64,000 bases of DNA from Chara braunii (lineage: Eukaryota > Plantae > Charophyceae): the NCBI GenBank assembly GCA_003427395.1, contig BFEA01000004.1:8612993-8676992 (forward strand), given 5' to 3'. A program made the position numbers and the translations under genes. This document shows positions 25,640 to 39,272 of the stretch, in pieces; positions within the stretch are counted from its first letter, which is position 1, and each line of letters starts with the position of its first letter. The notes beneath the pieces are model-generated. The model was given only the letters and a program-made list of their open reading frames with translations. It searched no databases and had not been told where the DNA came from.

Positions 25640-25749
25640 TCCCCTATTTTCCAGTTGTGCTAACACAGGACAAAACAGCAGGCAGGGTACACAGGATGGA
25701 ACAGCAGGCAGAAAAAGGAGTTTGCATAAAAGTAAAACAGAGAAAGATT
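25640..25749 (+). mobile_element. Old host LINE ORF2, left piece (continues at 39273)
   Basis: PLF and EKGV motifs as in the other LINEs; joins 39273 in frame: KSKTEKD|LRAALKESHNLQTNL. Confidence 0.7.
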
Positions 25750-28455
25750 CTAAGGTAGCAAGGAGACAGGTTATTCAGACAAAGGATCAGGGGGGTTTGG
25801 GCATCCTCGACCCGGGACAGCAGATCAAAGCACTCCAATCTAAATGGGTTATCAAATTGCTCACACAACCCCATCTCCGCTGGGTTCCATTGGTTTTGGA
25901 CAATATACGAGGGATGGCTAAGTATAAAACTCCGCCTAATATGGAAGGAATGTTCTGTTTTTTTTGTAAAGGATGGGCCAAAAGGGGAAGAGAAGGAATA
26001 CAGCGGGGGGAGGATGAGTCGACCAGGAGTTCGTATTGGGCCCAAATACTTAAGATATGGACAGATATATTCCCGGCAAGAGTAAGACATTAAGGACGAA
26101 GGAGGAAGTGCCTTGGCAACCGCTATTTTGTAATCCATGGTTGAAGGACCCCCAAGGAAAACCAAGGACACTCACAGCAAAGGATGCCAAGTGGGGAAAC
26201 TGGTTGGAACATGGAATATGGCAAGTGAAACATCTATGGTCAGAATCGAATGGAAGATGGAAAACGGGTAGAGAGCTGAGGGAAGAAATGAAGAGGTGTC
26301 ATAGACTAATTGAAAACCTGAATGACATATTAATCTCCATTCCGGAGGATTGGACGAGGATGTTGAGGGGTCCATACAAATGGGGATGGGATGATTGGGC
26401 AACTTGGAGTCATAGTGTAGAACCTCAGCAAGCCTTTTGAATTGGTCAGGAGGTAGGACCAGATAAACAGTGGTTGGAAGCGGATATGTATTCAATCTTT
26501 ACCCCAGGCACCACAGTGAGTCACTTAGATAAGGACTCAAGGGTACCGATCACCATCAGGAAGGATCTCTTGAGAAAAGTCATAGAGAATGACGAATTCA
26601 CAATATATGCTCCAACGATCACCATTCAGAATCTAGAGGTGGATCCAGTTGAATGGGCATGGAACATCAAGGGAAGCTCGTCACGAGCGGTCAAGAAAAT
26701 TAACATACTTCAGTATACGGCTAAATGGGGATATCGGCTTAGAAGAAAGTCGAACCACTTGGATAGGCCTTTGGCGATAAGATGGGAAAAAAGGGTGGGC
26801 ATACCAAGACAACAGGTAGGCAAAATACCATGGTCAAGCCTCCATGGTATCAGGTTGGGCAAGATCCGGAGTATGCAGTGGCTTATATTCCATGTGGCAC
26901 TTCCAGTCAACGTCTGGTTATATGAAAAAAGGAGTAGGCAGCATAGGGAAGAAATACAACAAGACTGTACTATGTGCACTGACAAAGAGCCTGAAGCGCT
27001 GGTACATTGCTTACTTAGATGTACGGAAGCAGAATACATATGGGCCATGGCCGGTATACTTTGGGAGCGTACTACGAACGTTCTCTTTCCAAGTAACAGA
27101 AGGCTCTTGCTTATGGGAAGGGAAGTACCTAAGAGATGGAAGGAGAGTGAAAAATACATCTTTCAGCTATTGAGACAGTATACATTGTGGATTATCTGGA
27201 AACGGAGATGTCAACGGGTGAAGTGAAAAATACATCTTTCAGCTATTGAGACAGTATACATTGTGGATTATCTGAAAACGGAGATGTCAACGGGTGATTA
27301 GCAAAAGTCTGATGACCAGGATGGAAGCCAGAACCATACTCTATAATCTATTGGAAGCAGACATTAGGGCTCAATGGCAGAGGATCAAAATACAAGCAGC
27401 AGTAAACCCTGAAAAGGCGAAGGCCATTCTCACGAAATTTCAGAATAAGGTATTGGCCAGTGGCAAAGCTGCGACCATAGAGGGACAGAGACTGATTTTT
27501 CATTGGTTTACGGAGGACAGATCAGAGGTGTCCTTGGGGGTCCAAGGAATGAAACAGGAAATAGGACTACCATAGGGATAGGAAATGGGAGAGAAAGTGG
27601 AGGTCAGTGGATTGATGTTTAATAAAAGCTATAGTTAAGGGTTTAGGGTTTAGGGTTTGGATAGACTTACACAGACAGGGTTTGGAATGGTAATGTTTTT
27701 CAGGAGGATTTCATGAGAGACACACAGATTATGCTCTTACAGCTTTAAAAAAAAAAAAAAAAACTCTGTTCAAATTACCCGGAAGAGACTTGATACGGAT
27801 TGGTTACCAAATGGCAAGGAGGCAGGGTTGGACAAGTCCGAGTGATCAGGAGGGATTGGTACAACACAGAAACAAGCAAGGATTTCAACAACGCGCAAGG
27901 AGACCTGATTTGAGAAACGGATCCTGGAAACAGGAGATGTTGGGCAAAGCACCTCCGGATCAGAACTCTAAAGAGAAAGCTTCGGACTCATACCACCACA
28001 TTCGGGGAGATACAGTCGGGGTCTGGAGCTACGCCAATGGAAGGCGAGAGCAAGGGAGGAGAGTTTAAAAAAAAATAATACTTCCAAGTGAGGGGCAGGG
28101 TTTAGGGTTTAGGGTTTAGTAGACCTCAAAAGAAGGGAGAAGGCTTAATGGGTTAGGGGATGCAGCGACTTACGGGCAGGGCCGATGAGGGGGAGAGCAC
28201 AGGCATATAGAAATAATGGGCGAGCTTTTTCTAGATGACATAGCACTATCTGGCAGAGCTGTTTTTTTCAGGTCTGAGAGGAAAGAGGGAGTCAAGGCAA
28301 GCTGACAGTCAATCCTTCACCGTTGGTGGGGCAATCAATGCTGTTCAGGGGTCCTCCGGCCAAACGGGACGAAGCGTGAGTTTTGATGCTCCCCAGAATA
28401 GAAGGAGCCAGGACCATAAGGCCCTGCATTTATTTAAAAAAAAAAAAAAAAAAAA
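25750..28455 (+). mobile_element. 5'-truncated LINE (ORF2 C-terminus, 3' UTR, tail, poly-A); may be two fused pieces
   Basis: GGLGILDP..ALQSKW, QPLFCNP, CTMC..EALVHCLLRC; internal A-run at 27747-27763; conserved tail and poly-A 28436-28455. Confidence 0.9.
27146..27297. repeat. 76-bp tandem duplication that breaks LINE ORF2
   Basis: AGTGAAAAATACATC...CAACGGGTGA twice. Confidence 0.92.
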
Positions 28456-30419
28456 CAGAGAAAGATTGAAAAACCAAGTTTCGCGTGAGCACCGTACCAC
28501 AGCGCTAATTCGCGCCTCCGCGCCGGCGCGGGTTTCCCTACTCACGGGAACCGTCGCGCGCGCAGTTGCGCGCATCTCCACCTCGGCGAAGTCGCAAGGA
28601 AGGCAAGGAGCGAAGGAGAGTGTGCGAAGCCACTTTGCGCCACGCCTCCGGGTGTGGCCCAACCTAGGGTCGGAAAGGGACAGACAAAGACAAAAGAGAG
28701 AAGAAAGGGGAGAGGAGAGGAAGAAGAAGCAACGACCCACCAGAGAAAAAGGGAAACGGGGATAAATAGGAAAAGACAAAGAGTCTGAGGAAGGGAAAGG
28801 AAGGAGAGGCGAGAGAACCGTACCGAACGAAGGGGAGCAGATCGTACATACAAGGCAAGCACACAATCATAATGAGTGGACAGAAGGAACAGAACAACAA
28901 TCCATTTCTCCATCATTACGATCGACAAGGAGTGAGTGTTTTGGCGGCTTTCTAAGGTGAGATAGTACACCCCTTCCCCCGACCCATCGCGTCCATGAGC
29001 CAACGGAGGACAAGCGAAGTCGAGAAGAGGAGACAACTTGAGGCGCCCGAAAAGAGAGGAAAAGCAACCACGAGGCACAAACACGGCTGATTGCTAACAT
29101 AGGAGGAAACCTATTCGGGAAACAGTCACGACGGTTTTGATACATAGAGCTAACATAGAAAGGAAAGATGCACGAGAAACACCAAGGAGGGATAGGCACA
29201 AAAGAGGCATGAGGGCTGCGGTAGAAGAAGATCGATCAACACGATTTTGAACAGGCTTCGGACAAAGTCTGGTCTCACAACACCAGCGAATGTAGCCTTA
29301 TTGTCTACTTGAAAATAGCAACTGACCTCCCGCACCAAAAAGGATAGGAGAAAATAGCGCCAACGCCCAGAAGAAACCAACCGAGAGGAAATCTACTCCC
29401 GCTCACCCATAGCCCATACCAAAGAATGATAACTTAGTCTCTCCACGCCCGATTCTTCACCCACACACATCTCCTCACTGAAATCCAAAAGTAGGTGAGC
29501 ACCTCACAAGCACCAGCGACAACAACACACACCTAAAAGCCTAGCCAACCCCCAAAAGCATCTAACGCCCAACACCCCCACCAACCCCGCAAACCCCGCG
29601 TCACAACCGACTGGTGAATACCAAACCCCCTCACTACCTACCCACCGTTCCCCTCTCACTCTCGCCCGATCTTCGCACCCGCGACACCGCCCATTTAACG
29701 GATCCCAAACACCACAGATCAAGAACGAAGAGGAAACAGGAGAAGACACCCACGAAACGAAATAGCAAACAATTCATTAACAAAGGAATATTCTTTCAGA
29801 CAATTTGTACACATTCCCCAACTGTGAATAAAAATTGAGCTTTTGTTAAAACTGATTACTTATTTAATTTAAGGATTATTGTCGCTAACAATCAATTATT
29901 CACTATTGATAAATTGGTGTATGCATTCTTTAACCAAGTTTAAGACTTTTCATAATAGTATTTTGATCCTTACTCCCCTAGCAAGAACATGTTTCGTAGC
30001 TGTTCCATAACCGTCTTCCCATAGAGTCCTCGCTGCCCGTCGATCATCCCTGAAGCTTGGTTTGCCGCTTTCTCTGTTTTCCTGCACAGATCTCTACGAA
30101 TCGCTACATTCACCGCCTGAGCCAAAACCGAAATCCCCGGATGGGAAGGCGAAACGCTGCCAATTTTTTTCGATCTTGAGATCAGACTCCTCTAAGCATT
30201 GAGAAGGAACGAGAGAACCTCGTGACCGAGGCGTGGTCCCAAGTATCGCCCCAGCACCCATTACTTAATCTTGATCAGTAGGAACAGGCTCCAAGAAGAC
30301 ACAGGATCCCCTCTTGTCTCATACATTCATTGATTAGCACAAAGGAACTAGACCCACGACAGTCCGCTGCCCAGCATATATCACACGAGTTCGCCCCTAT
30401 TTCACACCAGGGAGCAGCC

Positions 30420-39104: not shown

Positions 39105-39161
39105 ACAAAAAAAAAAAAAAAAAAACAGAGAAAGAATCTGAAAGATTAATATTTAATATTT

Positions 39162-39245
39162 ATACCTTTCTCGGCCTTTTGGCTAAGAACAAGTGCAGTT
39201 TCTGTTCTGCTCAGTTCAATAGCTGATCCGCGGTCCATTGGGCCA
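39162..39245 (+). pseudogene. U2: U2 snRNA 5' fragment retrocopy
   Basis: ATACCTTTCTCGGCCTTTTGGCTAAGA, diverged branch-site and stem II region, then poly-A and the target repeat. Confidence 0.9.
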
Positions 39246-39272
39246 AAGGCAAAAAAAAAACAGAGAAAGATT

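Follow-up and report, generated by a model that had tools for sequence, protein, structure and literature searches.

A stack of four co-oriented retrocopies separated by copies of one target duplication in Chara braunii, possibly made by reverse transcription restarting at a single nick

How can retrocopies of four unrelated RNAs come to lie in one row, separated by copies of the same short sequence? The question is raised by a stack within a 64,000-nt stretch of the Chara braunii contig BFEA01000004.1 (the window). A motif search of the window found the 16-mer AAAACAGAGAAAGATT identical at 25734, 28452 and 39257 and, with two variant copies, a total of five matches against 0.15 expected by chance (five or more in 0 of 100 shuffles); outside these five places, the motif was absent from the window. 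The first-pass annotation had counted the same five copies and described the third as lacking the C. The count stands, while the C of the third copy is replaced by A, not missing. The five copies bound four units, all on the plus strand and each A-tailed. The features, from left to right, are:

25604-25650, minus strand: the first ~54 nt of LINE-C in inverted and diverged form, holding a 13/16 version of the motif, 83 nt left of repeat copy 1
25734-25749, plus strand: repeat copy 1, exact, with GT on its left and then a non-LINE flank
25750-28451, plus strand: unit 1, LINE-A, with a 5'-truncated ORF2 C-terminus (zf-RVT, Pfam), 3' UTR and a conserved 3' tail module
28452-28467, plus strand: repeat copy 2, exact
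28468-38995, plus strand: unit 2, LINE-B, ~10.5 kb, with a GC-rich 5' UTR and the Pfam domains Exo_endo_phos, RVT_1 and zf-RVT
38990-39005, plus strand: repeat copy 3, with a single change of C to A, effectively an A-run plus GAGAAAGATT
39007-39121, plus strand: unit 3, U6 retrocopy (Rfam RF00026, 90.9 bits, whole model covered)
39122-39147, plus strand: repeat copy 4, a composite of a full copy AAAACAGAGAAAGAAT with a GAAT end, CT, and the half-copy GAAAGATT
39148-39161: AT-only filler of 14 nt (AATATTT twice) between repeat copy 4 and the U2 5' end
39162-39256, plus strand: unit 4, U2 fragment (Rfam RF00004, 68.4 bits, the 5' part alone in the alignment)
39257-39272, plus strand: repeat copy 5, exact, doubling as the first 16 nt of LINE-C
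39257-40290, plus strand: LINE-C, a decayed 5'-truncated ORF2 remnant with tblastx homology to LINE-B 36605-37548

Direct reading, Pfam and Rfam thus confirmed the earlier description of four co-oriented poly-A units: a truncated LINE, a near full-length LINE, U6 and a U2 fragment. They represent distinct RNA molecules, with Rfam identifying the snRNAs, and their A-tails are all pure (20, 24, 19 and 10 A in units 1 to 4, the AAAA of the motif included). The LINE-A body spans 25750-28435, with the pure A tail starting at 28436, and has tblastx homology to LINE-B 36089-37602; at the DNA level, the two LINEs have only the 3' tail module in common. LINE-B, apparently full length from its domain content, carries an endonuclease (33386-34474), a reverse transcriptase (~35295-35645) and a zf-RVT domain (37015-37671) in an ORF2 split into several pieces; its body ends at 38971, the tail module (38894-38970) being followed by 24 A. 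The U6 copy is full length (39007-39106/7) with an aberrant 5' stem and ~15 A after it. The U2 copy comprises roughly the first 89 nt, being truncated on its 3' side at an A-rich stretch short of the Sm-site region, and then 6 A. Nine ORFs of the window, four of them junction-spanning, had 0 exact matches in the sequence collection; a homologue search gave one weak match for the LINE-B endonuclease ORF and none for the ORF spanning junction 2. The U6 count in the 64-kb window is four, and the genome appears to be very rich in snRNA retrocopies.

The hallmarks of L1-type target-primed reverse transcription (TPRT) are present: A-tails, a target-site duplication (TSD) starting in an A-run, and 5' truncation in LINE-A. 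The duplication is 16-17 nt long, begins with AAAA, and was found between the units as well as at both outer ends of the stack. Comparison of the junctions supports a single pair of nick positions as the explanation for all five copies, TTT(T)/AC being common to the respective strands of both inferred nick sites, and likewise supports each unit as a separate A-tailed retrocopy, as TPRT predicts. In this part, the first-pass interpretation is supported.

Chimeric retrocopies such as U6/L1 and the tripartite forms arise by template switching of the reverse transcriptase (Doucet et al., 2015, PMC4476161; Gogvadze et al., 2007, PMC2104539). As in these, several templates, snRNAs among them, were copied at a single site by LINE machinery, whose typical products include full-length U6 and 3'-truncated U2-type retrocopies. 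However, the chimeras are direct fusions that have a single tail and a single TSD pair, and in U6-L1 chimeras the order is the reverse of that in Chara, where the LINEs come 5' of the snRNAs. The stack was not assigned to this class, since each of its units ends in a separate tail with a repeat copy behind it. Twin priming was likewise rejected as its origin because all units are co-oriented.

Into what sequence was the stack inserted? According to the first-pass annotation, deleting it would restore an older LINE ORF2. This claim failed on the left side. The right flank (39257-40177) is indeed LINE ORF2, with the motif in frame and fitting the K-T/S-x-K/R-x pattern seen in other LINEs. LINE homology ends, however, at the left edge of repeat copy 1, and no LINE ORF2 homology is present in the left flank: the conserved block HLW...RW, which precedes this position in three further LINEs within the window, is missing there, and identity to LINE-A is 3/18 immediately left of copy 1 vs 10/16 within the motif. 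Since homology stops at this edge, the stack is placed at the 5' end of a truncated LINE; on these alignments, its target is the 5' edge of the older LINE-C, not the interior of an intact ORF2. LINE-C itself is interrupted near 40290 by another repeat (a copy of which lies at 48493-49385), with an N gap beyond (41593-41831), and a 47-aa piece of it searched for relatives against 1.84 billion representatives gave 0 matches. The reverse complement of the left flank aligned with 39257-39310 at 40/47 matches and a 7-nt gap, with a score of 51 vs 24.5 +/- 3.2 for shuffles; this inverted arm is ~15% diverged from LINE-C. The reconstituted empty site folds as single-stranded DNA at -29 kcal/mol (z = -3.3). 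LINE-C was also considered as a fifth unit beginning after repeat copy 5. This was rejected because the inverted fragment has the motif contiguous with downstream sequence, and the match of the motif to the pattern of other LINEs speaks against it as well.

Lesion densities of LINE-A and LINE-B are alike (1.3-2.3 per kb), while LINE-C, with ~5 per kb, is clearly the older by this measure. Its decay, together with the divergence of the inverted arm, argues that LINE-C predates the stack. In comparison, ~140 nt of repeats and tails hold at most one substitution, and such pure tails and near mutation-free repeats suggest that the units are young and of similar age. The same data bear on the reading that the motif copies came from LINE-C RNA instead of target DNA, with LINE-C as the first template and its 5'-terminal 16 nt (for example, cut by RNase H) being re-copied. 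Such an origin would account for the shared position of the stack edge and the LINE-C 5' end, as the motif is LINE-C sequence and homology begins exactly there. Nevertheless, the higher lesion load of LINE-C and its diverged arm only 83 nt away make this reading very improbable.

A target hit repeatedly might be thought to reflect a sequence-specific endonuclease, and one of the Tx1 type had been suggested. The window does not bear this out. U6 retrocopies at 2612 and 22983 have TSDs unrelated to the motif, and unrelated sequence likewise lies behind LINE tails of a related type (14063 and 57715); these tails also dispose of the possibility, named earlier as a ground for refutation, that the motif is part of the normal end of these LINEs. 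Given these unrelated flanks, no sequence-specific hotspot is evident, and a Tx1-like specificity is not supported as judged from one copy each of LINE-A and LINE-B. Within the window, no single target sequence common to the LINE family and the mobilised RNAs was found. A scan of all A-runs in the window revealed no second stack, and ~8 other A-tails are all without a follower. The triple at 19182, 19268 and 19309 was rejected as a second stack, being an ordinary tandem repeat.

Trypanosomes have tandem retroposons "only separated by a TSD", namely ingi/RIME, L1Tc/NARTc and Tvingi/TvSIDER1 (Bringaud et al., 2011, PMC3820030, citing Dewannieux et al., 2003, for insertions that hit one position independently in human cells); such tandems are reported for human Alu as well. 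Like these, the Chara units are differing non-LTR retroposons, co-oriented and head-to-tail, with the same TSD between them and at the ends. In trypanosomes, though, a conserved motif lies upstream of the target and the TSD is fixed at 12 bp, whereas target specificity is not evident in the Chara stack; and in the trypanosome pairs an autonomous element is joined by its non-autonomous counterpart, in contrast to the four Chara cargoes, which are unrelated and comprise U6 and part of U2 besides the LINEs. The account given for ingi/RIME and L1Tc/NARTc, with their constant TSD (PMC3820030), would translate here into serial insertion on the left by an endonuclease of strong site preference with a fixed 16-nt stagger. 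The first-pass annotation had proposed such a leftward addition, and its observation was correct: the bottom-strand nick context GT/AAAA (cut at the slash) is kept in the leftmost copy alone. The polarity drawn from it is disfavoured. Had units been added on the left, repeat copy 4 with its GAAT end and half-copy, formed at the U2 5' junction, would have been the next target, yet copies 1-3 all read GATT without the half-copy. With the junction variants thus arguing against left-side re-targeting, and sequence specificity not seen, this order of events has very little probability.

Our preferred, though tentative, reading (probability of about 0.4) is one TPRT episode that restarted at a regenerated nick. 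L1-type machinery would nick the bottom strand at GT/AAAA and the top strand at GATT(T)/ACG, 16-17 nt downstream, whereupon an A-ended RNA would be reverse-transcribed with the T-rich 3' end as primer. In the next step, the end of this cDNA would jump to the 16-nt top-strand overhang and copy it, by which the nicked primer would be re-made (...CTCTGTTTT-3'). Left unligated, this regenerated end would prime on a further RNA. Four such cycles, in the order U2 fragment, U6, full-length LINE-B and LINE-A, would yield a concatemer finally fixed by ligation and second-strand synthesis. The internal repeat copies would thereby be fresh, error-prone copies of one overhang, made without a new endonuclease cut.

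The anatomy of the stack, its non-specific target and the variants at the junctions are observed; the single-episode timing and the re-initiation step are what we infer. The similar, young age suggested for the units and the lack of an evident sequence-specific hotspot count in favour of this reading. Five copies of one 16-mer bound four units of unrelated origin, and the copy-specific defects stay put: the C-to-A change is confined to copy 3 and the GAAT end with half-copy to copy 4, the other three (1, 2 and 5) being exact. Such non-propagating defects are expected if one original overhang templates every copy. The one-and-a-half tandem motifs with a 2-nt spacer in copy 4 suggest, moreover, that the same acceptor end (...GATT-3') was copied twice in succession within one integration. 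In cDNA order, U2 comes immediately before U6. The 5' end of U2 pairs with the 3' region of U6 (helix II), and the order hints that physically paired RNAs were picked up successively. The "at least four separate insertions" of the first-pass annotation are hence not required, as one re-initiating episode fits equally well or better. Against a single episode stands that no precedent was found for re-initiation leaving a TSD copy between cargoes; in the known multi-template events, the cargoes are fused directly (PMC2104539, PMC4476161). It would also need ~13.4 kb of cDNA, including the full 10.5-kb LINE, before the break was sealed. Furthermore, the window lacks a second stack, and the published account of TSD-separated tandem retroposons is one of independent insertions (PMC3820030, PMC5932611).

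That published explanation, transferred to Chara as serial independent insertions added on the right with LINE-A first, comes second in likelihood and is rather doubtful. Later nicks would fall in or next to the previous T-tract, with the top strand cut at the intact GATT(T)/ACG, re-duplicating the 16-mer and a few A. The full top-strand site context is, indeed, kept in the rightmost copy only. Copy 4 would be the duplicate to the left of the final insertion (U2), never re-used, which suits its aberrant form, and copy 3 would need one substitution or one reverse-transcriptase error. The lesion density is also slightly higher in LINE-A than in LINE-B, a difference that is not significant. On the other hand, four hits on one site would have occurred without evident sequence specificity, no follower has landed on any of the other A-tails of the window, and U6 would lie next to U2 by coincidence. 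The best endonuclease site would, in addition, be the left edge of a tail, so that tails should lengthen rightward, whereas 20, 24, 19 and 10 A are seen. Tandem dimers of transposable elements formed by double insertion in Drosophila (McGurk and Barbash, 2018, PMC5932611), and R1 arrays with duplicated rDNA target, are similar in the TSD copy at the junction, the distinct 5' truncations and the target preserved through duplication. They differ from the four-unit heterologous Chara stack with its snRNA retrocopies in being mostly one-family dimers, with preferred motifs and expansion by unequal exchange.

Third in likelihood, and unlikely, is an assembly artefact, in which the contig chained sequences through A-run plus motif, for example by merging same-site insertions in paralogous LINE-C copies. 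The assembly is a scaffolded draft, N gaps (24114-25106 and 41593-41831) flank the stack, single Ns occur elsewhere, and ~28-34 nt are common to all junctions. The four sequencing runs that contain the region all belong to one study of 2018, probably the source of the assembly. Every junction is, however, unique in tail length and, for copies 3 and 4, in repeat variant, unlike collapsed graph paths. The U6/U2 part with three repeat copies measures less than 300 bp and fits within single reads or read pairs. Even chained, several paralogs would need hits at the identical nucleotide.

Overall, the stack is an unusually long case of the known TSD-separated tandem pattern, and from its details one may learn how the reverse transcriptase starts again at a single DNA nick. 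The formation of LINE 5' junctions and the priming of the second strand are the least understood steps of TPRT. The locus offers a natural replicate series for them, namely four 5' junctions, all on one and the same overhang: one exact, one with an extra T (39006, directly after repeat copy 3), one with a partial or miscopied repeat, and one double jump with filler, copy 4 at the U2 5' junction having the look of a double template jump. If the serial reading were true, an A-tail beside a good top-strand site would be a strong local insertion hotspot. If a single episode is the true history, an unligated, regenerated nick would be re-usable and tandem retroposons would be explained without target specificity; re-initiation would then give an alternative account for TSD-separated tandems in other organisms and a route by which unrelated RNAs may be concatenated into new composite elements.

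The first-pass annotation had described four co-oriented, A-tailed units bounded by a repeated 16-mer, and this was borne out. Five matches of the 16-mer lie in the window against 0.15 expected, at least five occurred in 0 of 100 shuffles, and no further occurrence was found elsewhere in the window; the array (hereafter the stack) is present in the assembly far beyond chance. The repeat AAAACAGAGAAAGATT is found unchanged at 25734, 28452 and 39257 (copies 1, 2 and 5), has A in place of C at 38990 (copy 3), and is composite at 39122 (copy 4), where a full copy with a GAAT end is followed by CT and a second half-copy, GAAAGATT. 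The units of the stack and the related features are as follows.

25750-28435, forward strand: LINE-A, 5'-truncated, with zf-RVT, aligning to the C-terminus of LINE-B ORF2
28468-38971, forward strand: LINE-B, ~10.5 kb, with endonuclease, RT and zf-RVT; ORF2 in several pieces
39007-39107, forward strand: U6, full length (90.9 bits)
39162 (start), forward strand: U2 fragment, first ~89 nt of U2 (68.4 bits)
2612-2708, 22983-23083 and 52106-52210, forward strand: further U6 retrocopies within the 64 kb
28222-28380, 38894-38970 and 13871-14063: conserved 3' tail module in LINE tails
57715-57971 and 2794-2900, minus strand: conserved 3' tail module in LINE tails

A pure A-run closes each unit of the stack (20, 24, 19 and 10 A, the AAAA of the motif included). 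The conserved 3' tail module is the sole DNA-level similarity among LINE-A, LINE-B and the right-flank LINE, and it is common to otherwise unrelated LINE families of the window. LINE-A also contains a 76-bp tandem duplication (27146-27297, 98.7% identity) that shifts the reading frame. We read the U6 and U2 copies as plant type, and the density of snRNA retrocopies in the window is very high. At 52106-52340, an interrupted A-run and then LINE-3'-tail-like sequence (the CAATGCTG... block) come after U6; this may be a U6-LINE-tail composite. Within 23960-24045, another forward-strand tail module ends near 24018 and is followed by A5 and CAGACAAGTAGA, which shares 11 of 16 nt with the motif of the stack and lies directly before a (CA)n(GA)n tract and an N gap; it may be a chance match or a decayed sixth copy.

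The stack lies on a 16.5-kb gap-free stretch flanked by N gaps (24114-25106 and 41593-41831), which mark the assembly as a scaffolded draft. That the array arose by graph chaining during assembly is improbable, since tail length and repeat variant differ at every junction. Searches with ORFs of the window, some of them junction-spanning, for identical or homologous sequences gave no usable relative. Positions 1-2000 have 28% GC, numerous single Ns and, at 1281-1357 on the minus strand, a match to a group II intron domain (RF00029, 48.9 bits); this stretch resembles organellar DNA that was either inserted into nuclear sequence or joined to it by scaffolding.

The proposal that removing the stack restores an older LINE ORF2 was half right: the motif and the right flank are LINE ORF2, but the left flank lacks LINE homology. 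The right flank (39257-40177), a decayed ORF2 homologous to LINE-B 36605-37548, belongs to LINE-C, a truncated LINE whose first 16 nt are copy 5. In a codon alignment of four LINEs of the window, the motif codes for KTEKD, with KTGRE in LINE-A (10/16 nt identical) and KSVKK in LINE-B at the equivalent position. The block immediately left of this position (HLW...RW), strongly conserved in the other LINEs, is absent from the left flank of copy 1 (3/18 nt identical), where LINE similarity was found in no forward frame. When reverse-complemented, 25604-25650 can be aligned to 39257-39310: 40/47 positions match, with a 7-nt gap, and the motif is included and contiguous (score 51 versus 24.5 ± 3.2 for shuffles). 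The codon alignment and this independent inverted fragment together indicate that the motif is LINE-C-family sequence, and the stack sits exactly at the end of LINE-C homology; LINE-C was either 5'-truncated there beforehand or lost its upstream part.

The two segments form an imperfect inverted repeat with a 47-nt arm 83 nt left of the stack, and both arms stop at the identical ORF2 position. In single-stranded DNA, a long imperfect hairpin could have formed at the pre-insertion site (predicted -29 kcal/mol, z = -3.3). Disabling lesions per kb amount to ~5 in LINE-C, ~2.3 in LINE-A and ~1.3 in LINE-B, and the inverted arm differs from LINE-C by ~15%; both the lesion load and this divergence imply that LINE-C is older than the stack. 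A repeat at 40290-41592 and 48493-49385 (copies 78-86% identical) breaks LINE-C and extends into the N gap, so that the LINE-C 3' end and its own TSD are not visible.

A sequence-specific endonuclease, as first suggested, is not supported. Two of the three further U6 copies, at 2612 and 22983, have A-rich tails and clear private TSDs of 13-16 bp unrelated to the stack motif, and unrelated sequence follows the same-type LINE tails at 14063 and 57715 (minus strand). The motif is therefore not a shared target, and the LINE tails rule it out as the normal end of these families. The inferred nicks have one short motif in common (bottom 5'-GTTTT/AC, top 5'-GATTT/AC), and both, 16-17 nt apart, look like the ordinary L1-type T/A-rich preference.

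In the established model of target-primed reverse transcription, the right TSD copy is the old primer strand, and the left copy arises as the cDNA 3' end jumps onto and copies the top-strand overhang (PMC2881922, PMC2718515). Read in the cDNA sense, a 14-nt AT filler at the U2 5' end precedes copy 4, which consists of 8 nt copied from the end of the overhang, 2 extra nt and a 16-nt copy with one mismatch. This appears to be the pattern left when the template jump onto a single acceptor end (...GATT-3') is made repeatedly, which would place the formation of copy 4 during U2 integration. Serial addition at the left, the order originally proposed, is disfavoured: copy 4 as a later target predicts GAAT and the half-copy in copies 1-3, which have GATT. 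It would escape only if the next priming preceded mismatch resolution, which amounts to a single episode.

All junctions fit two models, serial right-addition and one episode. In the former, which we consider rather unlikely, every further insertion starts from a nick within or next to the T-tract of the one before, with the top-strand cut at the unchanged GATT(T)/ACG. Serial insertion is the published account of this array type: in ingi/RIME, L1Tc/NARTc and Tvingi/SIDER tandems, neighbours are "only separated by a TSD" (PMC3820030). With reference to Dewannieux 2003, Bringaud et al. explain tandem arrangements in humans by independent insertions (PMC3820030). In Drosophila, double insertions give rise to dimers of many TEs, among them jockey dimers whose units differ in their 5' truncation (PMC5932611). 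The best endonuclease site for later events is the left edge of each tail; cuts there should lengthen the tails rightward, and the lack of such lengthening favours a single episode.

We tentatively prefer re-initiation within one episode (probability about 0.4). The copied overhang would recreate the original nicked primer, which would start on the next A-ended RNA ahead of ligation. A single pair of cuts then suffices at a site that shows no particular specificity; copies 3 and 4 each have defects seen in no other copy, as would be expected if all were made independently, and with errors, from one template; the repeats and tails (~140 nt) carry at most one substitution; and none of ~8 other A-tails of the window has a follower unit. 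The cDNA order, U2 immediately before U6, also favours this model, as the U2 5' end pairs with the U6 3' region (helix II). Counting against it are the ~13.4 kb of cDNA demanded prior to sealing, the literature, in which we found no described case of re-initiation leaving a TSD copy between cargoes, and the known multi-template products, whose cargoes are directly fused (PMC2104539, PMC4476161), whereas each unit here has its own A-tail, with repeat copies between units.

Overall, the stack represents a heterologous form, with four units, of the known "tandem retroposons separated by a TSD", and it lies at the 5' edge of a truncated LINE that is older.
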